Shown here: positions 19,155 to 62,595 of the stretch, in pieces
How positions within the stretch are numbered: position 1 is the stretch's first letter
How the letters are laid out: each line of letters begins with the position of its first letter
IMG/VR virus record: IMGVR_UViG_3300024239_000011
Coordinates: 62,001-126,000 of that record
Length of the DNA: 64,000 bases
Direction: 5' to 3' (one strand)
Notes under the pieces: model-generated
The model's database searches: none
What the model was told of the DNA's origin: nothing
The model's input: only the letters and a program-made list of their open reading frames with translations
Translations under genes and position numbers: made by a program

Positions 19155-19248
19155 TGGAGGAAAGGGTCGGACTCGAACCGACATACCCCTGCGTTTGCAG
19201 GCACCTGATTTGCACTCAAGGACCGTCGCCTATTCCGGTCACCTTTCC
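19155..19248 (-). tRNA. tRNA-Cys(GCA) with long class II variable arm
   Basis: GGAAAGG/CCTTTCC, U73, loop GT-GCA-AA, arm CCTGC-AAAC-GCAGG. Confidence 0.8.
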
Positions 19249-34421: not shown

Positions 34422-34505
34422 TGGCGATCCTGAGAGGATTCGAACCCCCCTTTTCAGCATCCGACTACGGTTAAGCGGGTAGAAGCCGCCCCCGGCTACA
34501 GGATC
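34422..34505 (-). tRNA. rearranged tRNA-Arg(UCU)-like gene
   Basis: perfect acceptor and T arms; anticodon arm 8 nt after acceptor; GGAT-GC-TGAAAA after it. Confidence 0.7.
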
Positions 34506-36916: not shown

Positions 36917-37008
36917 TGGCTCCCACTTGAGGTTTCGAACCTCACCCCGCATCGCTGCGAGACTTCCGGTTAACAGCCGGATACCTTCACCAAGCCGGTC
37001 CAGTGGGA
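36917..37008 (-). tRNA. tRNA-Asn(GUU) with long variable arm
   Basis: TCCGG-CT-GTT-AA-CCGGA; arm CTCGCA-GCGA-TGCGGG. Confidence 0.85.
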
Positions 37009-37622: not shown

Positions 37623-37712
37623 TGGAGGACACGGTGGGAATTGAACCCACGAGGGGCTTTCGCCCGTGCGATTAAAAGTCGCATGTTCTCAACCAACAAG
37701 AACGTCGTGTCC
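37623..37712 (-). tRNA. tRNA-Lys(UUU) with class II arm, U73
   Basis: TGCGA-CT-TTT-AA-TCGCA; arm GGGC-GAAA-GCCC. Confidence 0.82.
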
Positions 37713-37968: not shown

Positions 37969-38056
37969 TGGAGACGCGAGTGGGAGTCGAACCCACCTGA
38001 CCTTTCGGTACAAACGGTTTTGCAGACCGCCGACTAAACCGCTCATCCATCGCGCC
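37969..38056 (-). tRNA. tRNA-Cys(GCA) with class II arm
   Basis: GCGGT-CT-GCA-AA-ACCGT; arm ACC-GAAA-GGT; U73. Confidence 0.85.
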
Positions 38057-41622: not shown

Positions 41623-41711
41623 TGGAGAACCGGGTGGGAATCGAACCCACGACGGGCTTTCGCCAGCAGTTTAAGAGACTGTTCCTACCAACCAACAGTA
41701 GGCTCCGGTTC
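41623..41711 (-). tRNA. tRNA-Lys(CUU) with class II arm, U73
   Basis: ACAGT-CT-CTT-AA-ACTGC; arm GGC-GAAA-GCC. Confidence 0.82.
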
Positions 41712-43601: not shown

Positions 43602-44423
43602 TTATTGATGCGCCACTACCTTCGAAATCGCTTCTTTGATTATACTCAAATCACCGTAAGCGATTTTTACCTTAGTTCTAATGTACTCCATTTTCTCGTG
43701 ATCCTGTTGCATGACCAGATGGTTCTTCGGATCAAGATATAAGTCAAAATCTGGCAAATAAAAATCTGGAAAATATAGATGTTTAATAGCTCGGTTGTCA
43801 TGCCATTCTATGGGTTTCGGGCGTATCCATTTGATTCCCATGGTATCAAGCAATGATGCAATTTCCAGTTCCCACGTACTCTGCAATTTTATTACTTTGT
43901 TTTGGTAGCGATTGAAATAACAAATGACCTTCGCCCCTAATGTTGGCTTGCTATTATTTCTCAATGCGACGATACAAGCCATTCCCCCACATGTCTTTCG
44001 TTGTTTTAATGCATCCTTGCCACAAATAGGACAGTGTTTAGCAGGGGTTTGTTGCTTTGAACACCCGATAGCATCCAATGCAGCATGCCACGACCCGAAA
44101 ACACTCACGTAATGACAATAATGCGGATATTTCAACCCGTCAAACATAGTGCTGGTTGGTATTGTCCCGGTTTCATCTGCATATCGTCGTAATTCTGATA
44201 GCAAAACATCATTGGAATGTTTTGTTCCTTTATTATTACCAAACTTAACAATAGGCAGACCAGCTTCGGTCAATGCACTATTCCAATTTCCGAACACATT
44301 CTTATAAGTGTTGGAACCAAATAGATAACCCTCAGGCTTGGGGCGAAAATCCCTTTCACGGGGCACCCTTCCAAATTCCTTGTAAAAACGTTGCAACTCT
44401 GCTAACATGATCTCTCTAGACAT
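43602..44423 (-). CDS. homing-endonuclease-associated repeats plus PD-(D/E)XK nuclease domain
   Basis: two EL.R.....G..P...F...Y..VFG.W..AL repeats; QSTWE...YFPDFYLPDFDLYLDPK. Confidence 0.8.
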   Translation of the reverse strand: MSREIMLAELQRFYKEFGRVPRERDFRPKPEGYLFGSNTYKNVFGNWNSALTEAGLPIVKFGNNKGTKHSNDVLLSELRRYADETGTIPTSTMFDGLKYPHYCHYVSVFGSWHAALDAIGCSKQQTPAKHCPICGKDALKQRKTCGGMACIVALRNNSKPTLGAKVICYFNRYQNKVIKLQSTWELEIASLLDTMGIKWIRPKPIEWHDNRAIKHLYFPDFYLPDFDLYLDPKNHLVMQQDHEKMEYIRTKVKIAYGDLSIIKEAISKVVAHQ

Positions 44424-45227
44424 ATGAAACCTCGTTTTGGCGCGTTCCTAATAGTATTTAGCAGACACCACAAGAAACGCGCCAAAACAGCGCAAAATGT
44501 TATTGATGCACCACATTTTGCTGGGTGCTCAAACATATCAGCACTGGAAACCAGAGGGTGGGCTACCACCATCGCTGTGAGTTACGCGCCTACGCACGCT
44601 CTCACTCCCTACCAGATACCTAGCTTTCCCCTCTCGGGTACCGGCTTTACAAAACAAAAAGCCCCGCTCCACTTTGCCTTTTTTGGCTTCGCGGAGCGGG
44701 GCTTTGTTTTAGCCCTTTTTGGAGTAGTTGGATCAGATTTCTTTGATCCTTCCTTCTCCGTTCGCTCCATCAGCCGTTCCGCGCTTATTTGCAACGGTGG
44801 CGACAGTAAACCAACGACCACGACCGCGACCGCACACGGCGGCGGCGATAATCGTCGCTTTCCGCATATTGGTGGTGGTCATGGTGGCGAACATTGAAGG
44901 CAAACTCCTAAATCTCGTTGAGCGAGGACATGTGTCCGTCGCGTTGATGGGGTCAATCTAATGGCTTTGATCACCCCCGTCAACATTTATTTAGCACGGA
45001 ACGCATTTTTTGTGTCCAAAATACATAACCAATTGAAAAATAAGTATTTTTGATAGCTATCTTCTGTGGTTTAAACCGATACTTCAAAATTTTTTGAGGT
45101 CTTTTACCCAGAAAATGATGCTGACCCTCCATAATGAAAGTTCGGCATACCCATCGTCTGTAAGATAACCCCTCAGAAGTAGTCCGCCAAGGTGACTAAA
45201 TATTCGATCAACCATAGGGGGTTCACT

Positions 45228-46049
45228 ATGTCATATGTTCCACGGGAGGCAGTTGCTTCCGATGTTGAAAAATACGCCGACCAAACAGGTGTGCTGCGCA
45301 TTTCTACGTTGTCGGATAATGATGCTGACACGTTTATTAAACTCGAAACTACAACGGATGACGATTTCATCCGCGTGTCTACGGCGGGTACGGAACGGCT
45401 TGTATTGGACAATACCGGTACACTGACCATTAAGACGGCAACGGTATCCGCCACTGATGCGACCACCGTCAACTTAGCAACCAGCGCATCCAATACAACG
45501 GTCAACATTGGTACTGGTGCTGGTTCTAATACAATTACATTGGGTGGTAGTGCGAGCGTGATTGTACTCGGGTCAACCCCAACGGCATCGAGCCATGCGG
45601 CCAACCGTGGTTATGTCGATTCCCAGATCAGTGGATTATCCAGCACCTATCTTGGACTCGCGGGTGGTACCCTTACCGGCGCCCTTACCTTACATGCCGA
45701 TCCATCTTCAAACCTTCATGCCGCAACGAAGCAGTATGTGGACAGTTATGTAGGAACGAACAAGGTGGTAGTGACTAGTGGTTCCAGTTCAACCGTTGCC
45801 ACTAATACCGACATTCTCATCATCAATAAAGGTACTGGTGGTGCCCATACAGTTGTATTACCAGCCGGGGCATCATTCACGCGCAAAACCCTTATTATCA
45901 AAGACGGTAAAGGGGACGCGGGTACCAATCCCATAACCATTGATGCGAATGAAAATGAGACAATTGATGGGTCTGCTACCAAAATTATCGATGCAAATTA
46001 CATGGCGCTTACCCTTACGTGGAATGGCACCGAATGGAACATTGTTTGA
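45228..46049 (+). CDS. tail-fibre-like structural protein
   Basis: HAANRGYVD, LAGGTLTGAL, HAATKQYVD, ETIDG. Confidence 0.75.
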   Translation: MSYVPREAVASDVEKYADQTGVLRISTLSDNDADTFIKLETTTDDDFIRVSTAGTERLVLDNTGTLTIKTATVSATDATTVNLATSASNTTVNIGTGAGSNTITLGGSASVIVLGSTPTASSHAANRGYVDSQISGLSSTYLGLAGGTLTGALTLHADPSSNLHAATKQYVDSYVGTNKVVVTSGSSSTVATNTDILIINKGTGGAHTVVLPAGASFTRKTLIIKDGKGDAGTNPITIDANENETIDGSATKIIDANYMALTLTWNGTEWNIV

Positions 46050-46061
46050 TAAGGGGCTACA

Positions 46062-46592
46062 ATGACATATCTTTCAACAGATAATATAGTCGATAAGGCA
46101 TATCGCCCTTTCATCGCCCTAAGTCTTCAAACGGATTTGGCGATGAATAGATCAACCCCCACCGAAATTACCTGGGATCGTGCAGACTATGTGTGTGACG
46201 TATACACATTCACCCTTGGGCAATCCGGGATCACAATCAACGTGGACGGATGGTATCATCTGACAGCGGAAATCAGCCTAAAACTGCTGAACAATTCCGC
46301 AACCACATCTGTCATTGCCATTTTCCAAAACAACACCCAGGTGGGAAACAGCCTATCCTTTGGTTACCACACCAACAAATCCAACGGAACCAGCACCCTT
46401 ACCGTAGAAGGGACCGTACAAGCATTAGCTAATGATGTTCTGGATGTTCGCGGCTGGAATTACGCGGGTTCTGGCAATCTCTCGACCGTTGCGTCCGGGT
46501 GCCGTATGCGCATCGAACAAATGTTGGATAGTCCGTACAAATCCAACTACCTGTGGCGTGTCACCAATTTAAAAAGCGGCAAAGGGGTCTGA
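46062..46592 (+). CDS. C1q-like beta-sandwich fibre-associated protein
   Basis: ITINVDGWYHLTAEI...QALANDVLDV. Confidence 0.6.
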   Translation: MTYLSTDNIVDKAYRPFIALSLQTDLAMNRSTPTEITWDRADYVCDVYTFTLGQSGITINVDGWYHLTAEISLKLLNNSATTSVIAIFQNNTQVGNSLSFGYHTNKSNGTSTLTVEGTVQALANDVLDVRGWNYAGSGNLSTVASGCRMRIEQMLDSPYKSNYLWRVTNLKSGKGV

Positions 46593-46593
46593 T

Positions 46594-47253
46594 ATGCCGA
46601 AACCAACATATACGCCAGTCCCCACAAACCAATTCGTTCATGCTGACTGGAATAACCAACGAATTATCATTGGTCCAATCTCTCTTCCTGCAAATATGAC
46701 CGTTGCCGGGAAATCATGGAAGTTGAAAGACAAGAACGTTGCCGAACTGGCTCAGATGCAATGGTATCCATTCGTCTACACGAACAGTCCGCCGATCATT
46801 CCATATGAGGTTTACACTAATATCGACCTGAAATGGCGAAACGGGCAAGTGGAGGCGACTTTCGTCAAACAGCAAATTCCACTCGAAACGGCCAAAGGCT
46901 ATCGACGTGATGAAGTCAATTCACGGCGTGAAGAATTGCTGAAGGCTGGCATCGTTTTCCAGGGAAATACGTTCGATACCGATGATCGTTCCATCCAAAA
47001 CATCATGGGCGTGAATACCCGTATTGCGCTGGGAATGGTATTGCCTGCGGGGTTCACATGGCGTAGCGCCAACAACCTTGATGTGCCCATGGATAACGTC
47101 AAGATTCTCGCGTTGGGCGCCTCAATGGCGCATTGGACTGACGCGATCTACAATGCGTCATGGACGCATAAACGTGCCATCGACGCACTGACCACGGTCG
47201 ATGCGGTGATCAACTACGACACCGATACTGGGTGGGTATCAAACGTGTACTAA
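46594..47253 (+). CDS. DUF4376-like tail fibre assembly protein
   Basis: FQGNTFDTD..S..NI.G...FTWRSANNLDVPM. Confidence 0.75.
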   Translation: MPKPTYTPVPTNQFVHADWNNQRIIIGPISLPANMTVAGKSWKLKDKNVAELAQMQWYPFVYTNSPPIIPYEVYTNIDLKWRNGQVEATFVKQQIPLETAKGYRRDEVNSRREELLKAGIVFQGNTFDTDDRSIQNIMGVNTRIALGMVLPAGFTWRSANNLDVPMDNVKILALGASMAHWTDAIYNASWTHKRAIDALTTVDAVINYDTDTGWVSNVY

Positions 47254-47256
47254 AAG

Positions 47257-47289
47257 CAAAACCCCCTGGTTGTTAGCCAGGGGGTTTTG
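47257..47289. terminator. bidirectional terminator
   Basis: AAAACCCCCTGG-loop-CCAGGGGGTTTT. Confidence 0.85.
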
Positions 47290-48316
47290 GTTTAGATTTC
47301 CACGGCGTGAGATTACCGCCATGAAGGATGGGTCTTTGGAACCGTACCGCGTAGCTTGCGACCAGCGTTAATTCCTAACATCCATGGGCTTTTGACCCAT
47401 ATCCCACCAGAGCCGCTTTTTTTAGCGAGTAGCTTATCTCGCGTCGTTGGTGATTACTCGGTGTCTCTTCCACAGAGATAGGTCAGCTAAACCCACCAAT
47501 GCAGCGCCCACACCAAACTGCTTCGCTTTGCGGGCTAGGCAGCACCTCCTTCCTTACGGGGAGGCGTTAGGCTCCTTCTCATCACCAACCGGGACAGGCT
47601 TTTGCGTTTTTGCATATCAAAGCCATGATTGATGCCGGATTCTCACCCGGCGGGCACCCTATCAGTGACGTGCTGTCCCAGTCCCTCCATGAGTTTTTGA
47701 CCCACAGAATTATAGACACGCCACGTACTTTTCTGCTTGCAAGCATACTCAGCGGTTTTTCAAGTTCCAGTCCCCACGGGCATTACGCTTAGGGTCCAGC
47801 AACTTTCAAACTGTCTTTCGCCCTTGGCTGCGAACCTCGGACTACGGCAGTAATGTACCATATTACCAGTCTCGGCACCACCCGTTAGCTGGAACATCCT
47901 CATTGGGTTGGTAGCCCTCCGAAGATGTTGTCTATGACACAAAACGTCCACAGACTATCCCTTAGTCTTCCACTTGGACTGGTTTTGCCATGGAGGGGTT
48001 CGTCACCCTCTTCCCTGATCGCCCTTTCTGTTCTCACCTCTCGGCGGAACTCGGATTGAACAGAGTTCGTTCCCATGCCGTCGTCAGTTTTATTCACCGC
48101 CTGCTCTCGCAACCGATGACCACCCTCTCGGGTGAGACTGGGACTTGCTTAGATGAACCGTATTGCTACGGCGGGGTTATCGTAGGGATTTCCGCCTTTA
48201 CACGAGTTGCCTCGTGCTATTCTTATGGACGCCAAGCCGCCCAATCTATCGATTAACAAATTCAAAGAGCAAGCTGAGTTAATCTACCCAGCTAAACCAG
48301 CCTTTCGACCGGCGAG
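47290..48316 (-). ncRNA. giant structured RNA of about 1,030 nt, GOLLD-like
   Basis: promoter and terminator bracket an ORF-free region dense in GNRA/UUCG hairpins; 3' end GGCGGTAATCTCACGCC. Confidence 0.65.
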
Positions 48317-48322
48317 GCACGG

Positions 48323-48351
48323 TTTATACCGTTCCTCTTTTTCTTCGTCAA
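48323..48351 (-). promoter_or_regulatory. sigma70-type promoter of the giant RNA
   Basis: TTGACG-N17-TATAAA. Confidence 0.75.
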
Positions 48352-48548
48352 CAACTATTTTCGTTCGTCGCGATTTTTATTTCGCTTCGTCCCGAGCGTT
48401 CGTTGTCGCCGTCGAAGTGAGGTGTTTATATCTTTCCTCATGGGAACCGTCAACACCTTTTTCCATAATAATGCGATTTTTATCCGGTCGTATTGACCGT
48501 TTGGTTTTACAACGCTACAATGTATTGAAACTATACAAGGTTTATATC

Positions 48549-48791
48549 ATGACCACACATTGTCATTATCAGCAAGTCGTTGTTGACCCTGGCGGCAATC
48601 CGCGCACGGTTCTCGCCCTCGACAGCTTCGCGATGGATGAAATTCGGCGTGGGCTGGAACTGGTCGCCCGTGAGAAAACGGGAGGCACCACCGATGCCAA
48701 GCGAAACACCCTGCTGGGCGAGTTCAACATCGCCATGGGTCAATCGGAAACCGAACTTCGTCGGTTGCCCCGGAATTCGGACGAGGAATAA
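48549..48791 (+). CDS. hypothetical protein
   Basis: GC3-rich ORF followed by a terminator. Confidence 0.6.
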   Translation: MTTHCHYQQVVVDPGGNPRTVLALDSFAMDEIRRGLELVAREKTGGTTDAKRNTLLGEFNIAMGQSETELRRLPRNSDEE

Positions 48792-48838
48792 AAAAGGGCG
48801 CCGAAAGGCGCCCTTTTCTTTTACCGGGGAATGGTCGC

Positions 48839-49297
48839 TTACGCGGTGACCATTTCCTTGGCGATCCGGCTGGCGGTCGCGTTGTCGAACTGACCAGCAT
48901 ACTGGGAATTCAACGCACCCATGATCTTGCCCATGGACTTCTGTTCCTTGGGAAGGTTCTGCTCGCTGATGATCTGGGTGACCAGTTCACGAATCTTGTC
49001 CTCGGACATCTGCGGGGGTAGGAAGGTTTCGAGGATAACCGCTTCAGCTTCACAGACAGCCGCTTCGTCGGCACGACCAAGGTTCGCATAGCCAGCGCCA
49101 GTCTCACGCTTCTGACCGACGTTCTTCTTGATCGTGGCGATCACATCCAGATCAGTCGGCTCCTTGCGCTCCTTACCGGAAGTCATGGCAGTATTCACAT
49201 CCGAAATGACCTGACGGATCAACCCCAGCTTCACGGAGTCTTTGGCGCGCATAGCATCCTTCATAGATGCCTTCAAAGTCTCCATCAATGCGCTCAT
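48839..49297 (-). CDS. yqeY: GatB/YqeY domain protein
   Basis: MKDAMRAKD..KL...IKKNV.QKRE...EA.ILE.FLP.QMSE...MGKIMG. Confidence 0.9.
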   Translation of the reverse strand: MSALMETLKASMKDAMRAKDSVKLGLIRQVISDVNTAMTSGKERKEPTDLDVIATIKKNVGQKRETGAGYANLGRADEAAVCEAEAVILETFLPPQMSEDKIRELVTQIISEQNLPKEQKSMGKIMGALNSQYAGQFDNATASRIAKEMVTA

Positions 49298-49440
49298 GAC
49301 ACTATACTCCCTTCCAAATGTGCGCGGACAATACACGCCGTGATCGCATTTGGCAAGAAAATATTGTGTAACTGATTGGGTCATCTTTACGAAAAGAAAA
49401 GGGGGCGCAAGTGCGCCCCCTTTATGAAGGTCAACCAACC

Positions 49441-51117
49441 CTATTCCTCATTATCGTCCGACATGTCTCCGTCCACATCATCAACGAATTCATCGGTGAG
49501 TAGGGAAGAAGCACCAGTAACGCTGCTGATATCCATACCAATTTGCTTGGCAAGGGCATCAACTGCCGGGCTTTGCAGGCGGAAATTCAAAAGACCATCG
49601 ATCACCTGATTGGCGACGCTACCACCGGTAGCCGTAGGCTTACCATCAGTGCCGGTCATCACGCCACCGACACCGCCCAAACCGGACAACATGTGGACGC
49701 GCACGCCTTCGATGTTCTCAAGCGGCTTAACCATCTGTTCGAGAATGCTGGGCATCTGCTCGATAGCGGTCAGGCGGACGCGGTTGGACAGAACCTTGAT
49801 GTCCAGAGTATTTTCGGCTTCGTTCAAAGCACGACGACCAGCAGCTTCAACTTCAAAGTCCTTCGCTTTGGCTTCCGCTTTGATCTGAATGGTTTCGGCT
49901 TCGGCTTCCGCCTCGATAATCAATGCAGCAGCGCGATCTTCTGCCGCAGCCTTTTCAGCAGCGGCAGCGACCTTGATACCCACGGCATCCTGTTCGGCTA
50001 CCTTGGTCGCTTCGATCACGGCGATGTTCTTGTTACGCTCGGCAATCGCAGTTTCCTTGGCGGTAACCACCGCTTCTTCTGCGGCGACCGCAGAAGCTCG
50101 TGCCTTGGCAGCATCCGCTTGTGCCTTCGAGTTCTCTTCAGACTTCTTGGCGATGGCGATCTTCTGATCCTGCTGGGCGAGTTCAATTGCCTTGGCGGCG
50201 TCGATCTCGTTTTCCTTCACCTTCTGGTTCTTGGCAATACGGGCTGCCTCAGTTGCCTGCTCAGCCGTAATACGGGCAATTTCAGCGGCACGGTTCTGCT
50301 CGGCTTCCTGCTCAGCAATCACACGCTGCTGTTCCGCACGACGGGTGGCAACTTCCCGTTCTTGTGCCATCTGCGCATACTCTTGTTCACGAGAAATTTC
50401 CAAGCTGCGCTGATTGGCTTTGAGGTTTTCTTCCTCAATCGCAACACGGGTTTTCGCCTGGATTTCGTTGCGCTGCCGATTTTTTTCTTCGGTAATGGAA
50501 GTCAGCTTTGCCAAACCCTCAGCGTCAAACGCATTGTTCGGATTGAAAAATTCCGCAGGAGTCTGGTCAAGACCGGTCAATGAAACCGACTCAAGTTCCA
50601 GACCATTCTTGGCAAGGTCTTCGGCAACCGTAGTCTGCACCCGCTGGACAAAAGTCACGCGGTTCTCATGGAGTTCCTGCATTTCCATCTGGGCAGCGAC
50701 CGAACGCAGGGCGTCCACAAACTTACCTTCGACCAACGCCGACAATTCACGCGGCTCCATGGTACGGCGACCAAGGGTTTGAGCGGCAGTCGCAATACCG
50801 TCACTATCAGGCTTCACCCGGACATAGAATTCCGCCATCACATCAACGCGCAGGCGATCCTTGGTAATCAAAGCTTCCTGGCGTTTACGCTCGACCTGAA
50901 GTCGAAGAGTTTGCATGTTCACGTCAATGACTTCGTGAAACATCGGGATCACAACGGCGCCGCCGTCCTTGACCACTTTCTGACCACCAGCACCGGTACG
51001 GACAAATGCCCGTTCCTTAGTCGCACGGCGATAAAGCTTCATCAGCACCAGACCGAAGCCAATAAACCCAACAAACAACACACCAACAACCGTGGCAATA
51101 AAACCCCAGTTCTCCAT
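49441..51117 (-). CDS. flotillin-like YqiK-family protein
   Basis: N-terminal TM, AFVRTGAGG.KVV.DGG, ITKDRLRVDV, GLELESVSLT, long Ala/Glu coiled coil. Confidence 0.9.
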   Translation of the reverse strand: MENWGFIATVVGVLFVGFIGFGLVLMKLYRRATKERAFVRTGAGGQKVVKDGGAVVIPMFHEVIDVNMQTLRLQVERKRQEALITKDRLRVDVMAEFYVRVKPDSDGIATAAQTLGRRTMEPRELSALVEGKFVDALRSVAAQMEMQELHENRVTFVQRVQTTVAEDLAKNGLELESVSLTGLDQTPAEFFNPNNAFDAEGLAKLTSITEEKNRQRNEIQAKTRVAIEEENLKANQRSLEISREQEYAQMAQEREVATRRAEQQRVIAEQEAEQNRAAEIARITAEQATEAARIAKNQKVKENEIDAAKAIELAQQDQKIAIAKKSEENSKAQADAAKARASAVAAEEAVVTAKETAIAERNKNIAVIEATKVAEQDAVGIKVAAAAEKAAAEDRAAALIIEAEAEAETIQIKAEAKAKDFEVEAAGRRALNEAENTLDIKVLSNRVRLTAIEQMPSILEQMVKPLENIEGVRVHMLSGLGGVGGVMTGTDGKPTATGGSVANQVIDGLLNFRLQSPAVDALAKQIGMDISSVTGASSLLTDEFVDDVDGDMSDDNEE

Positions 51118-51134
51118 AGAACTAACTCCTAAGA

Positions 51135-51761
51135 TTAGTATTTTTGAGCACGAAAGTGGTTTTCACCCAGACACTTAGTCAGGAGTATGCGTGACCCCTG
51201 CTCAATTTCGCCGTCATTGGGTTCCACTCGCAGATAGTGAACTTGACCATACTGATCTGTACATTTGGCTTCCGCCGGAAACCCCGGACGTGCAGTTCCA
51301 ATGGTAATCCAAGCTTCTCCACCAACGAAATCACGGATGGTCACTGCACTGGTGATTTCTTTTGGAAAGATTCGCGCGGTAATCACGCAGATAATCTTCG
51401 CCGGGACAACTGCAACCGGAACCACCAACAACCCGGCGATCCACACCGGAACCATTCCCCCGAAAATACCAGCGGCGATCCACTGAACAGTCCAACCGAT
51501 CAACCCGTAGCACATCATGAACGCCATCAGAATGATAAGGAACGGAACCTTACCGAAGTACATCCACCCAAGGAAATGAGTCAACACCCCAGCATCAACG
51601 TGAATATCAACATCCACATCAGCATCGGTATCCATCCCCGCAAATTCACCAACAGAGTGATCCACCGATAACCCGAATGCTTGGAGTACGGTGATCGCAA
51701 ACATAAGTCCAATTGCAACCGTAAACGGCACAACCGAATCATTGGTAAAGAATTCAAACAT
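51135..51761 (-). CDS. YqiJ-like membrane protein (NfeD-like OB fold)
   Basis: FTVAIGLMF, WMYFGKVPFL, G.A...IG.A..G.PAEA...DQYGQ.HY; precedes flotillin. Confidence 0.85.
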   Translation of the reverse strand: MFEFFTNDSVVPFTVAIGLMFAITVLQAFGLSVDHSVGEFAGMDTDADVDVDIHVDAGVLTHFLGWMYFGKVPFLIILMAFMMCYGLIGWTVQWIAAGIFGGMVPVWIAGLLVVPVAVVPAKIICVITARIFPKEITSAVTIRDFVGGEAWITIGTARPGFPAEAKCTDQYGQVHYLRVEPNDGEIEQGSRILLTKCLGENHFRAQKY

Positions 51762-51847
51762 GGCAAGTCCTTGGCCGGTGGTTTGTATCTTCTTATCCCA
51801 TAATCAACGGGCAGTCAAAGAAGAAAGAGAGGGGAATGTCCCCTCCC

Positions 51848-52273
51848 TTACCCCAACATACGCAGGATAAACGGAACGCTTGGGTCACGAACTTCAATGA
51901 TTGCGTTCCACGGCACGAATACCGAAGTTGCAACCCCACTGAAGTAAATTACCACCGTGAACCCTTCATCAGAAATTTCCAGATCATGGAACTGGTTCTG
52001 AAGCACGATGACAGTTTCCCCACGCAAATGAAGGGGGAACCCCGATACCCCGAAAATCGTGGTATCGAGGGTGATGTAGAAATGGTGTCCGTGATCATCA
52101 ACATTAGGATCATCACGGAAATTGGATAAGACCTCACGAATCATCCGAATGTTTGCAAGATGGTGTTCTCGCCGGAAGATACCGTCGTAATCAAATGCAG
52201 TGGGACTGTTCCCGGTCGCCGCTGATTTGTCTACCTGGGATTTTTTACCAGGGAAATGAATTACGTTTGTCAT
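51848..52273 (-). CDS. sspB: alphaproteobacterial-type SspB ClpXP adaptor, core domain only
   Basis: HHFYIT.DT...GV...IVLQNQF.DL....F.V...FSG.....VPW.AI....DPSV.F.L. Confidence 0.85.
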   Translation of the reverse strand: MTNVIHFPGKKSQVDKSAATGNSPTAFDYDGIFRREHHLANIRMIREVLSNFRDDPNVDDHGHHFYITLDTTIFGVSGFPLHLRGETVIVLQNQFHDLEISDEGFTVVIYFSGVATSVFVPWNAIIEVRDPSVPFILRMLG

Positions 52274-53975: not shown

Positions 53976-54536
53976 ATGTTGATCATGCTACTAGTGACGT
54001 GGCGCGATGATGACGCGGTGGAGCGTCAGGCAAAAACTCTATTACATCCACGTGGATGGTTTGTCGCAGAGACGTATACACCAGACGAGGATGAGGATGA
54101 TGGAACCACGCTATTCCGCATTGAACCGTTCGTCGGACAACGAACAACTGAAATCCCGGACAAGCTTTATCACGCCACCCCTGCACAAAATGTCCCGCGC
54201 ATTCTCAAGCAAGGGCTGATCCCACAACGGGGAAAGCACACCGGAATGTTCGCGGCTACACCAAACCGAATCTATATCGCCAAATCACTTGCCTACGCCG
54301 TTGATATCAAGAATATGCTTCAGAAGCACGATGGCTACAGACAAGACTACGCGATCATCGAGATCGATACGACGAAACTCCGGAAGGGGACGAAATTCTA
54401 TATCGACCCGCAATACCATTCTGGCGTCTACACGACCACGCCTGTTCCACCCGCCGCGTTGCGCGTACTCGGCAATGAGGAAGTGGAACAGTGTCCGGAA
54501 CCGGATTTCGACTACGAACTAGCGATGAATGTCTAA
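53976..54536 (+). CDS. ART-fold protein, Tpt1/KptA-like
   Basis: LYHATP..NVPRILKQGLIP, IYIA, IIEID. Confidence 0.6.
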   Translation: MLIMLLVTWRDDDAVERQAKTLLHPRGWFVAETYTPDEDEDDGTTLFRIEPFVGQRTTEIPDKLYHATPAQNVPRILKQGLIPQRGKHTGMFAATPNRIYIAKSLAYAVDIKNMLQKHDGYRQDYAIIEIDTTKLRKGTKFYIDPQYHSGVYTTTPVPPAALRVLGNEEVEQCPEPDFDYELAMNV

Positions 54537-54636: not shown

Positions 54637-54930
54637 TGGATCGGGGAGAGGGATTCGAACCCCCATAAAGTGGACCCTTACCACTTCGACTTTCGCCGCC
54701 CTCTTTCGAGGTTTGTGGTCTGGACTTTATCTTCACCATAGCTTGCGCCGTAGGTGCTGCCCGTCAAGTCTCTACACCTTCCGCTCTCGCGGCTTGGCTC
54801 GGGATTGGCATTTTACAGCGTTCCCCGAATTTGAGCAGTTCTACATCAAAGGTTTCCCTTTAAGCATCCGGTTTTCCTCTGTGTGGGAGGAAGGTAAAAA
54901 CCACTGGTCCTACCGTTAGACGATCCCCGA
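54637..54930 (-). tRNA. tRNA-Gln(UUG) interrupted by a group I intron
   Basis: exons 54897-54930 and 54637-54676 join to a 74-nt cloverleaf with loop TT-TTG-GT. Confidence 0.8.
54677..54896 (-). ncRNA. group I self-splicing intron, about 220 nt, no ORF
   Basis: P AAATTCGGGGAA, Q AATCCCGAG, R AGAGACTTGACGG, S AAGATAAAGTCC; P7 GACTT/AAGTC; P9.0 ACCAC/GTGGT; terminal G. Confidence 0.9.
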
Positions 54931-54980: not shown

Positions 54981-55574
54981 TTACCATCGTGTCGGTAACT
55001 GAGCTTCACCCGCAATCAAGGACGGCTCATAGATAATATCCTTCGGGTCATGATCTTTGTACCCAAACCCACGATACTTTTTCAACCGATCAGCCTTGAC
55101 ATCACCACCCGGCTTGGATGGACGCAACGTCATAGTCTTATTGTCCCAGAAGAAGTTATCGGTACATATCACTACGCGATTAAACACGTCAAGCGCACCT
55201 TGACACACCGTCATATCAAACGACTCAAAAATACTCATGGGCGAATCGAAAGTACGTTCGACCAACTGTATACTAACATAGTGATCTTCTCCGATCAGAA
55301 TGCTTTCATAGCTAGTGGCGTTGGTACTATTGTAGGCAACTTCCTCACCACCCGCATATTCAGACAAATAATCATTGAATTTTGCATGATCGTTGCTCGA
55401 CCGTGTGTAGCAGTCCACATCACCATCTAGAAGATTACGACCAGTTAGAAGCCGAGAAACAAATCCCCCGGCAATCATAACCTCGACCCCACTATCACTG
55501 ATGAACTTGAAAAGTTCTTTAAATGGATAATCATGGGGGTATTTCTGGGTTAGACTGAACAACGGTATGATCAT
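54981..55574 (-). CDS. second nucleotidyltransferase-like protein
   Basis: IAGGFV...DGDVDCY, FDMTVCQ, RLKKYRGFGY. Confidence 0.7.
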   Translation of the reverse strand: MIIPLFSLTQKYPHDYPFKELFKFISDSGVEVMIAGGFVSRLLTGRNLLDGDVDCYTRSSNDHAKFNDYLSEYAGGEEVAYNSTNATSYESILIGEDHYVSIQLVERTFDSPMSIFESFDMTVCQGALDVFNRVVICTDNFFWDNKTMTLRPSKPGGDVKADRLKKYRGFGYKDHDPKDIIYEPSLIAGEAQLPTRW

Positions 55575-56030: not shown

Positions 56031-56345
56031 TTACCGAATCTTCAGGTAAAGATTCTCACCGTCTCGGTGCTGATCCAACTGCTGCTTGGTGGGTTCGTAG
56101 AAATCCATCAGCGCAGGAACAGTCAGTCCGAGGTCGTAGGCGTACCGAAGAAGCTGTCGAATCTGCTCCTGGCTGAACATGCCTTCATTGGCAAAATGAT
56201 CGGTCATCAATTCAACATGAAATGCAGCTTCTTCATTGCCGCGTAGCTTTGCCATGTCGAACACGTTGCGTATGAGATCAAGCAACGGCTCAATCATTTC
56301 ATCACGAATTTTCATTAGCTTACCTTCTGTGGAATCGTAGTTCAT
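56031..56345 (-). CDS. hypothetical protein
   Basis: 104 aa ORF. Confidence 0.65.
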   Translation of the reverse strand: MNYDSTEGKLMKIRDEMIEPLLDLIRNVFDMAKLRGNEEAAFHVELMTDHFANEGMFSQEQIRQLLRYAYDLGLTVPALMDFYEPTKQQLDQHRDGENLYLKIR

Positions 56346-56952
56346 CTACCTCGATATCAATGTCGTACTTTGCCCACAGCAAGGTCAAGAAATCAGTGGC
56401 TTCTTGCTCACTAAATTCCGACGAAAAAGCAGTCATGTTCAATGCGCGGAATTGCACGCAGCGTCGCAGGTCTTCTTTGATTTGAATGATGTGGGGATGG
56501 TTCTTATATACTTCGCCAATCCGTTGGCGGATGGCATTCAACTTGATGAATTTTGTTCGTTCTGGTGGTAGAACAACCTTATCGGCTTTCTTCCCATTAC
56601 AGTTGGCACACATGGGTTGCCCATTCGCCAATGTGTCGTTCCCGCCTTTTGATTTCGGAACGATGTGATCCAACGTCATCAGATCACGACCACCGTTCCG
56701 CATCCCATACAGGTTCATAATCGAAAGAGTACAGTCCTTGGGCGTATCCAACCATATTTCAACGAAATGATGTCCTTCCAGCCCGCAAGAAACGCATTTG
56801 GTGCCTTTCTCAACAAACAACTGAAGGGTACGAGATATCCGCAGACGATTACCACTGGGTAGCCAAATGCTGCGTTTGCCATCGGCACGTGCCTGGGTCA
56901 GCAACGGCATAATCTCAGCAATAGGATAACTCGCTAAGGGCTGTTCGGACAT
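56320..56952 (-). CDS. HNH endonuclease
   Basis: MTLDHIVPKSKGG.D.L.N...MC..CN..KAD. Confidence 0.88.
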   Translation of the reverse strand: MSEQPLASYPIAEIMPLLTQARADGKRSIWLPSGNRLRISRTLQLFVEKGTKCVSCGLEGHHFVEIWLDTPKDCTLSIMNLYGMRNGGRDLMTLDHIVPKSKGGNDTLANGQPMCANCNGKKADKVVLPPERTKFIKLNAIRQRIGEVYKNHPHIIQIKEDLRRCVQFRALNMTAFSSEFSEQEATDFLTLLWAKYDIDIEVDELRFHRR

Positions 56953-61617: not shown

Positions 61618-62595
61618 CTACGTTTGAAGTGATGCTGCTTTCACTTTTTGAGTATAGGTTATTACACAATGGTCGGTGATCCCGTCTAGTAATCCCAGCG
61701 AGCCATTGTTTACCGCTCCAAATTTGTGCAAAACCCATTGACCTCGCATAATCACATCATCCACCCAACGATGCCACCAGCGAGCGTTGTGAATTAATTC
61801 GCCCACATGAGAAATGTAGATCATATGCCCGGTATGACGGAAAAAGATTGGTGGTGGTAACTGAGGTACGATGTCGTCGTTATGAACAAAGCGAAAGTGC
61901 GGAATAAGGTACTTCACACGCTTGGCAAATTTGCTATCTCCGACTCTCGGGCTACCGAACGTATAGAGTCCGTGACCACCAAAGCGACTTGCCGCAATGG
62001 TCGCTAATGCACCACCAAGAGAATGCCCGCACCACCATATAGATCGACCGTGTTTATTTGCTTGGATACAGCGTTCCATTTCTGGCCAAATCAAATCCAG
62101 TGCATGTTGGAAACCGTTATGAACTTTTCCGCCGTTCTCGGAGTCTGTAAATAGAAAATCCATATCAGTTTTGATGTCTTTGAACTCATTCAATTCGGTG
62201 CCACGAAATGCTATTACAATTATATGGGTACCGATGGCAATGAATGCCTGGGTACCTTCACAATCATAAAAATGAACATCCACAAACCCAGCATTAATAA
62301 GTTGGGCAGCAACACGCTCATTGTCTCGCAAATATACCAACCGGGAGCATTCTACCAGCCATGTTGCGTTGATAGGACTATAAAGCAATGTGTCATAATC
62401 AAATGGATGGGTTTGATGATAATCGAACCAGCCATATTTACCCGGAGGATCAATAATATCTAACTTGGAATAGGAAATCACCCCCATAGCACACACCTCG
62501 CAATTCTCTTGCGAATATTTATGCAGCTTTGGGTAGTTCAGATGTGACGATACAGTGAACTTTGGGATGACCAATTTCTTCGTCATTACGTCCAC
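61618..62595 (-). CDS. class 3 lipase
   Basis: IAFRGTE, VHNGF, GHSLGGALA, FGSPRVG, HNDDIVP. Confidence 0.92.
   Translation of the reverse strand: MDVMTKKLVIPKFTVSSHLNYPKLHKYSQENCEVCAMGVISYSKLDIIDPPGKYGWFDYHQTHPFDYDTLLYSPINATWLVECSRLVYLRDNERVAAQLINAGFVDVHFYDCEGTQAFIAIGTHIIVIAFRGTELNEFKDIKTDMDFLFTDSENGGKVHNGFQHALDLIWPEMERCIQANKHGRSIWWCGHSLGGALATIAASRFGGHGLYTFGSPRVGDSKFAKRVKYLIPHFRFVHNDDIVPQLPPPIFFRHTGHMIYISHVGELIHNARWWHRWVDDVIMRGQWVLHKFGAVNNGSLGLLDGITDHCVITYTQKVKAASLQT

Follow-up and report, generated by a model that had tools for sequence, protein, structure and literature searches.

The window analysed here, 64,000 nucleotides in length, covers positions 62,001–126,000 of a viral record that measures 543,035 bp and is complete according to CheckV. 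The genome has a G+C content of 48.7 % and encodes 66 tRNA genes, 64 of which are encoded by the minus strand within the interval 77–172 kb. Inside this region and on the same strand, at 109.3–110.2 kb of the genome, lies the RNA gene characterised below; the nearest tRNA gene is 3.8 kb off, beyond the 3′ end of the RNA. A preliminary description of the locus, made from its letters, had proposed a phage non-coding RNA of a type found near tRNA clusters, and both the viral origin of the record and the position of the locus agree with this.

The window itself contains 37 tRNA genes, all on the minus strand (15583–61585). ARAGORN assigned a four-base anticodon (ctta) to the tRNA at 34422–34505. 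Long tRNAs are found at 19155–19248 (Cys, 94 nt), 36917–37008 (Asn, 92 nt), and 37623–37712 and 41623–41711 (both Lys, ~90 nt), and the tRNA at 37969–38056 is Cys(GCA) according to ARAGORN, yet it reaches 50.6 bits with the tRNA-Sec model of Rfam and so passes the cut-off of 47. Two homing-endonuclease-like genes, one of the HNH-repeat type and one HNH, are situated near tRNAs on either side of the locus (43602–44423 and 56320–56952, both on the minus strand). We also recovered a group I intron match at 54697–54900 (minus strand; 52.1 bits, threshold 50), positioned between an ORF for a DUF2204-like nucleotidyltransferase (54981–55574, minus) and a weak Tpt1/KptA-like ORF (53976–54536, plus); no interrupted host gene was identified around it.

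Regarding the immediate neighbours, tail-fibre-like genes are located on one side of the RNA gene and genes for a YqeY-like protein, a flotillin/YqiJ pair and an SspB-like protein on the other. The latter form a cluster of cellular type (48839–52273, minus strand; the flotillin is of the SPFH/Flot type) upstream of the RNA and on the same strand. These genes look proteobacterial, which may hint at the host.

The coordinates of the features are summarised in Table 1. The locus appears to form a transcription unit of its own, in which two tandem sigma-70-like promoter sites, P1 and P2, would drive the RNA and an intrinsic terminator would end it. The preliminary description had noticed a single promoter, TTGACG-17-TATAAA, and a terminator enclosing the region. 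Both are present and the unit is real, but it had to be refined as lying on the minus strand, and an identical second site, P2, stands in tandem with the one described, P1. Both sites match the consensus in 11 of 12 positions and may thus be called near-consensus as originally stated, except that the −10 hexamers end in A and lack the usually conserved final T; a consensus scan that demands T at this position did not list them for that reason. A pattern scan of the whole genome found TTGACG-17-TATAAA only in these two copies, while we calculated a chance expectation of about 0.2. Transcription would start near 48316 from P1 and near 48418 from P2, giving a predicted primary transcript of about 1,065–1,165 nt around a GOLLD core of about 940 nt (47304–48243, minus strand). 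The terminator, which is terminator-like on both strands, closes the RNA unit on the minus strand as well as the convergent tail-fibre-like gene (46594–47253) on the plus strand. The hairpin in the leader may act in attenuation or in processing, and the leader may be removed from the mature RNA. On the plus strand, a promoter-like sequence TTGACC-17-TACAAT (10/12) stands back to back with P2, ahead of an ORF of 80 aa (48549–48791; together 48493–48791). No family matched this ORF and IMG/VR yielded no relatives of it; when it and the DUF4376 tail-fibre-like protein were used as flanking probes for related loci in IMG/VR, none was recovered.

Table 1. Features of the RNA locus, listed in the direction of transcription (window coordinates).
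Feature	Coordinates	Strand	Basis
Promoter-like site P2	48425–48453	−	−35 TTGACG 48453–48448, 17-nt spacer, −10 TATAAA 48430–48425
Promoter-like site P1	48323–48351	−	−35 TTGACG 48351–48346, 17-nt spacer, −10 TATAAA 48328–48323
Putative 5′ leader, ~73 nt, from P1 to the conserved GOLLD core	48244–48316	−	Sequence; holds a GAAA-capped hairpin
Hairpin and U-rich tail in the leader, terminator-like by scan	48272–48293	−	Position between P1 and the start of the conserved RNA
Start of the 5′ domain: GGCGGCUUGGCGUCC, GCAA-capped hairpin 48216–48201, UAAAGG, GGCGG/CCGCC helix, CAUCUAAGCAAG	48141–48243	−	Shared motif and profile
Expanded lineage-specific middle, 304 nt versus 186 profile positions	47837–48140	−	Gap between profile matches, alignment, fold
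Conserved 3′ part of the 5′ domain (..GGUUCGCAGCCAAGGGCGAAAGACAGUUUGAAAG..CUUGAAAAACCGCUGAGUAUGCUUGCAAGCAGAAAAG)	47725–47836	−	Second collinear profile match
GOLLD 3′ domain, the part modelled by RF02032	47304–47724	−	Rfam covariance model, end to end
Variable linker of the 3′ domain, 53 nt, without tRNA	47612–47664	−	Alignment with relatives; several relatives have a tRNA here
Bidirectional intrinsic terminator	47257–47289	both	G+C-rich stem of 13–15 bp followed by a U run

To assign the RNA to a family, we ran the complete set of 4,227 Rfam models on positions 47150–48550, accepting matches with E ≤ 10. The one strong match was RF02032 (GOLLD) on the minus strand, with 129.7 bits and an E-value of 1.4e-35, and it spans the model from end to end (1–416 of 416). 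ROOL, OLE, tmRNA, RNase P, rRNA and other large-RNA families gave no match in this stretch at the same threshold. The preliminary description had guessed at GOLLD and suggested a covariance search with GOLLD, ROOL and OLE models; the guess proved right, with a score that does not reach the gathering score of 150 bits. Since this cut-off is a curation threshold, the homology is not in doubt. The low score does explain why the default scan of the window displayed only tRNAs and the group I intron, and routine annotation would miss this GOLLD for the same reason. The match is unique in the genome, no match was found in 14 control genomes, and the score is the lowest among the full-length GOLLDs compared.

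Within the RF02032 model, 77 of the 89 pairs are canonical here. The other 12, which we counted from the NC marks in the alignment, include four that make up the inner helix of the P21 three-way junction; this helix is unmatched and the junction carries two variable hairpins. The A-rich loop of the first hairpin, the CGCAA loop and the terminal GUAAUCUCA hairpin (L27) are present, and so is the long-range helix. The two 3′ motifs that the preliminary description had put forward as GOLLD-like are indeed elements of the GOLLD 3′ domain (model positions about 315–325 and 400–416), with GGCGGUAAUCUCACGCC located at 47320–47304. The locus is almost certainly a member of the GOLLD family, and it is filed as a new divergent member rather than as a new kind of RNA.

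The claim that the region is free of ORFs is only loosely true, as mechanical ORFs of 54–88 aa occur, the longest having 88 aa on the plus strand and 70 aa on the minus strand. One could therefore read the region as coding for small proteins, or as a long mRNA leader, with no structural RNA at all. Such a reading is extremely improbable: a Pfam search of these ORFs returned no match at E ≤ 1, natural single-nucleotide indels at 47606 and 47710 (see below) would frameshift three of them, and the longest ORFs of homologous RNAs vary in strand and position. Moreover, the minus strand has no gene between the region and the terminator, and the highly significant Rfam match speaks against both versions.

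As Rfam models the 3′ domain only, we searched IMG/VR for true GOLLDs by degenerate patterns, using the Rfam model for confirmation. A two-part DNA pattern was of low specificity (5 true GOLLDs among 50 records, the rest mostly chance), while a three-part pattern recovered 23 true GOLLDs among 29. About 35 GOLLD loci were retrieved, scoring 156–314 bits. When the 736 nt upstream of the 3′ domain were compared by blastn with the upstream regions of these loci, a short match recurred, consisting of GGCGGyUUrGCGUC followed by a GNRA-capped hairpin and UAAAGG, here at 48243–48190. In 18 canonical loci this motif is located 323–428 nt upstream of the 3′ domain, as opposed to 517 nt here (counted from 48243).

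We then built a profile from the 5′ domains of seven relatives (contigs of 21–457 kb), excluding the sequence under study, and searched both strands of the genome (1.09 Mb). It gave exactly two matches, which are collinear and both at the locus: profile positions 1–97 aligned to 48243–48141 (E 1.5e-8) and positions 284–387 to 47836–47717 (E 0.0017). The expanded middle between them is rich in hairpins capped by GAGA, GAAA and UUCG. By eye, the 5′ end of the env-38 GOLLD has the same layout. The short 'mainstream' 5′ domains yield a profile that fails to reach this sequence, and a mixed alignment intended for a covariance model of the 5′ domain was too irregular for use. Searching metagenome contigs with the 5′ motif as a pattern produced 49 stretches, mostly chance hits in G+C-rich DNA, with about seven GOLLDs including the window's own contig. 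On the sequence, we regard the 5′ half (47725–48243) as GOLLD too. A 'tRNA-Thr' reported by ARAGORN in the 5′ expansion at a relaxed threshold was rejected, as the Rfam tRNA model found nothing there at E ≤ 10 and the relatives have a CGCAA-type hairpin at the aligned position.

The predicted fold of 47304–48243 on the minus strand has a free energy of −347.4 kcal/mol and a z-score of −3.73, and none of 20 shuffled sequences folded as well; the plus strand of the same stretch gave a z-score of −0.72. The hairpins described earlier with GCAA (48210–48207), GAAA, GAGA, GUAA and UUCG caps can all be read in the sequence and the fold. Covariation across relatives had been suggested as a further check, and RNAalifold, run on this RNA together with the seven relatives, predicted 158 pairs, of which 107 show at least one compensatory change. 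To avoid circularity, we also predicted the structure from the seven relatives alone. In this case 101 of the 174 pairs (58 %) are kept in our RNA, against 30–39 % when the partners are slid by 1–3 columns, and 34 of the 101 are preserved through changes on both sides. These figures are probably underestimates, because the alignment was built on sequence alone.

A blastn search of the locus against 50,697 phage records gave zero matches. Among the IMG/VR contigs, other GOLLDs are found on large ones, namely L170 (457 kb), L174/L199 (330 kb) and L171/L068 (192.5 kb), with L216, L226, L227 and L232 as their kin. The L170 group has the 5′ domains closest to that of our RNA, with 52–56 % identity in global alignment, and shares with it the start of the 5′ domain, GGCGGCUUrGCGUCCAU..CAUCUAAGCAAG, and its end, ..GAAAAG..GAGUAGCCCGCAAGGCAAAAG. 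These relatives differ in scoring 156–195 bits, i.e. above the threshold, and in their shorter 5′ domains of 366–428 nt. In four of the GOLLDs ARAGORN finds a tRNA in the linker (L199:966–1811, minus; L216:1209–2052, plus; L226:7908–8748, minus; L232:6906–7747, minus), whereas our RNA has none. The anticodon of the embedded tRNA is UGA in three and UCU in one, which indicates that the tRNA was exchanged or changed its identity within one GOLLD lineage. We considered the linker of our RNA as a possible tRNA relic, but the z-scores against the embedded tRNAs of relatives were only 0.3–2.7 and this was not established. Comparing ten neighbour proteins with 14 loci around the GOLLDs of other phage contigs revealed no synteny.

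With the GOLLD family as described (RF02032; Weinberg et al. 2009; env-38, PMC12286853), the RNA shares a full-length match to the 3′ domain, the layout in two domains and the variable linker. Common elements are also L27, the CGCAA loop, the GCAAAAG.CU junction, the A-rich first loop and the motif with the GNRA hairpin at the 5′ end, as well as phage origin, a place among tRNA genes and a length of more than 800 nt. It is unlike the GOLLDs compared in the size of its 5′ domain (about 420 nt in env-38), and unlike a typical GOLLD in the divergent P21 junction, the tandem promoter-like sites and terminator of its own, the 543 kb genome that hosts it and the score below 150 bits. GOLLD is also described from tRNA arrays of Mycobacterium (Morgado et al. 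2020, as cited in PMC12286853; PMC6582537). Those copies likewise lie within tRNA-gene arrays on mobile or phage-derived DNA, but they belong to actinobacterial genomes and mycobacteriophages, while ours is in a huge phage with neighbours that appear proteobacterial. ROOL and OLE are large, highly structured and self-assembling as well, and ROOL is also phage-borne, located near tRNA islands and cage-forming; however, neither model matched the locus, and their sequences and secondary structures are unrelated. In the literature searched, no paper connected GOLLD with wastewater RNA or with phages of jumbo or huge size.

As an independent line of evidence, we inquired whether the RNA can be found in public sequencing runs. 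According to an index of such runs, the 1.1 kb stretch occurs in the source study's own DNA runs, which are subsurface metagenomes, and also, with 18–69 % of the sampled words present, in sixteen libraries of RNA type prepared from wastewater, sludge and soil. Contigs from eight of the RNA libraries were aligned to 45000–50900 and 46400–49399 and proved to be confined to 47316–48378; the longest measured 973, 922, 875 and 870 nt and were 99 % identical to the window. The flanks, 2.3 kb of genes on each side (45000–47300 and 48400–50900), received no contig from the eight libraries except for three pieces of 34–40 nt with 3–4 mismatches each (near 48800 and 50830), which are probably from other organisms. 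The contigs end in sequencing adapters instead of continuing into other DNA. The 2 kb of tail-fibre-like genes next to the RNA served as a control; they were complete only in the DNA runs of the source study, and at most 9 % of their words were present in three large wastewater libraries. Carried-over DNA would include the flanks to the same extent, so the RNA libraries probably contain the stretch as a separate molecule of about 0.9–1 kb. The runs were found by means of this very stretch and it is only the absence of the flanks that is informative; moreover, the Logan contigs used come without strand, true depth or a link to the stage of infection. We consider it highly probable that the locus gives rise to a discrete, abundant RNA.

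The contigs also bear on the ends of this RNA. Their low ends are at 47316–47334 or further in, and none from the eight libraries reaches the terminator. On the other side, the long contigs of libraries X7, X6, X9 and X12 stop at or inside 48241, one ending exactly there, at about the first base of the conserved core, and only X5 and X14 contain the leader. The contig end at 48241 and the absence of contigs at the terminator hint that both leader and terminator may be trimmed. The contig from X5 extends to 48378, upstream of P1, which fits the use of P2.

Two haplotypes from wastewater differ from the window by eleven substitutions and three single-nucleotide indels. Haplotype A was found in X7, X9, X12, X16 and X19 and haplotype B in X5 and X6, the libraries being of different studies; both lack one window base at 47710 wherever it is covered (X5, X6, X7, X9, X12). 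The indels at 47606 and 47710 fall in the flank of the linker and in an internal loop. Read on the RNA strand, the nine transitions are without exception C>U or A>G, and all eight that affect positions paired in the minimum-energy fold keep the pair as G-U. These observations are relevant to the possibility that the locus is a decaying, non-functional GOLLD relic whose low score reflects erosion, for which the sub-threshold score and the missing linker tRNA of the relatives could be invoked. We regard this as very unlikely. The two promoter-like sites and the terminator are intact, the folding is in excess of shuffled sequences and strand-specific, the RNA occurs without its flanks in libraries of several studies and habitats, and the subsurface and wastewater copies have remained about 99 % identical, with changes that preserve pairs. 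Taken together, 47304–48243 on the minus strand is very probably a full-length but divergent GOLLD RNA that forms its own unit and probably assembles into a homo-oligomeric cage.

GOLLD RNAs are among the largest non-coding RNAs of bacteria and phages, and their protein-free cage exceeds the ribosome in size. In Lactobacillus brevis, GOLLD RNA rises during phage lysis. The cryo-EM structure of the env-38 GOLLD is a closed 14-mer of D7 symmetry with bridges B1–B10 (Kretsch et al. 2025, PMC12286853); its caps consist of 5′ domains and its ring of 3′ domains, and the variable linker is located in the interior (PMC12286853). By analogy with this structure (PMC12286853), our RNA would fold into separate 5′ and 3′ domains and self-assemble into a closed, RNA-only cage, its 5′ domains making the caps, its 3′ domains the ring and its short linker facing inwards. 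We somewhat favour such a homo-oligomeric cage for this copy. Short motifs were compared by eye with the env-38 contact table, the numbering of which is off by 1–2 in places in the supplement text. The elements that look retained are the A-rich L14 loop (47700–47694), the GNRA loop of the 5′ hairpin (48210–48207), L27 with GUAAUCUCA, and the CGCAA loop (47532–47528) together with the junction GC (47605–47604). Elements of bridges B1, B6 and B7 seem to be kept, as does one palindromic loop, while the second junction loop does not: again by eye, one junction hairpin has the palindromic loop UAGCU (47489–47485), and in the other GUGGA (47473–47469) replaces the usual CGCAA-type loop, so quaternary contacts may differ. 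The 24-mer at the 3′ end of env-38 was absent from the viral contigs searched.

The RNA could also be a GOLLD homologue that assembles unlike the 14-mer, with another stoichiometry or as an open half-shell or a monomer, and possibly with a different role. In the solved structure the half-shells are joined by two self-kissing loops and one A-minor contact (Kretsch et al., PMC12286853), and here the inner helix of P21 is unmatched and one of the loops is non-palindromic. The 5′ domain, 517 nt against 323–428 nt in all others compared, with 304 nt in place of 186 profile positions in its middle, and the lowest 3′-domain score of the set point in the same direction. However, L14, the CGCAA loop with its junction GC, the GNRA loop and L27 are kept as judged by eye, and the 5′ and 3′ domains of GOLLDs evolve independently in general (PMC12286853), which makes an altered assembly unlikely in our view and leaves the closed cage as the preferred reading. 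A more far-reaching idea is that this GOLLD, enlarged and divergent as it is, builds a particle of RNA alone whose unusual stability lets it last outside cells, with a cage geometry unlike that of the 14-mer. An extracellular particle of this kind would explain why this RNA of about 0.9 kb (~99 % identity) is found in libraries of wastewater, sludge and soil RNA, small in size and from at least seven studies, with essentially nothing else of the phage, and a bigger cap domain with altered junction loops would lead to a geometry differing from the solved one. We consider this idea rather improbable.

As for function, we suppose that the phage would produce the RNA in large amounts during lytic growth and that it may act on the translation apparatus. 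The authors of the env-38 structure pointed out that tRNAs, which the linker sometimes contains, could be enclosed by the cage, and reported that ribosomes bind GOLLD in pull-downs (PMC12286853). It is this ribosome binding, along with the placement among tRNA genes and the tRNAs in the linkers of relatives, that suggests a translation-related role, which is a guess and a doubtful one. The lack of an embedded tRNA in this copy indicates that carriage of a tRNA is not the essential role.

The RNA is the most divergent full-length GOLLD among those compared, and it combines the largest 5′ domain with the absence of an embedded tRNA and a self-contained promoter/terminator unit. As it scores below the Rfam threshold, similar copies have probably been missed in the genomes of huge phages. 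As environmental RNA libraries from several studies contain it without its flanks, the RNA offers convenient natural material with which to ask if GOLLD cages occur, and last, outside the laboratory.
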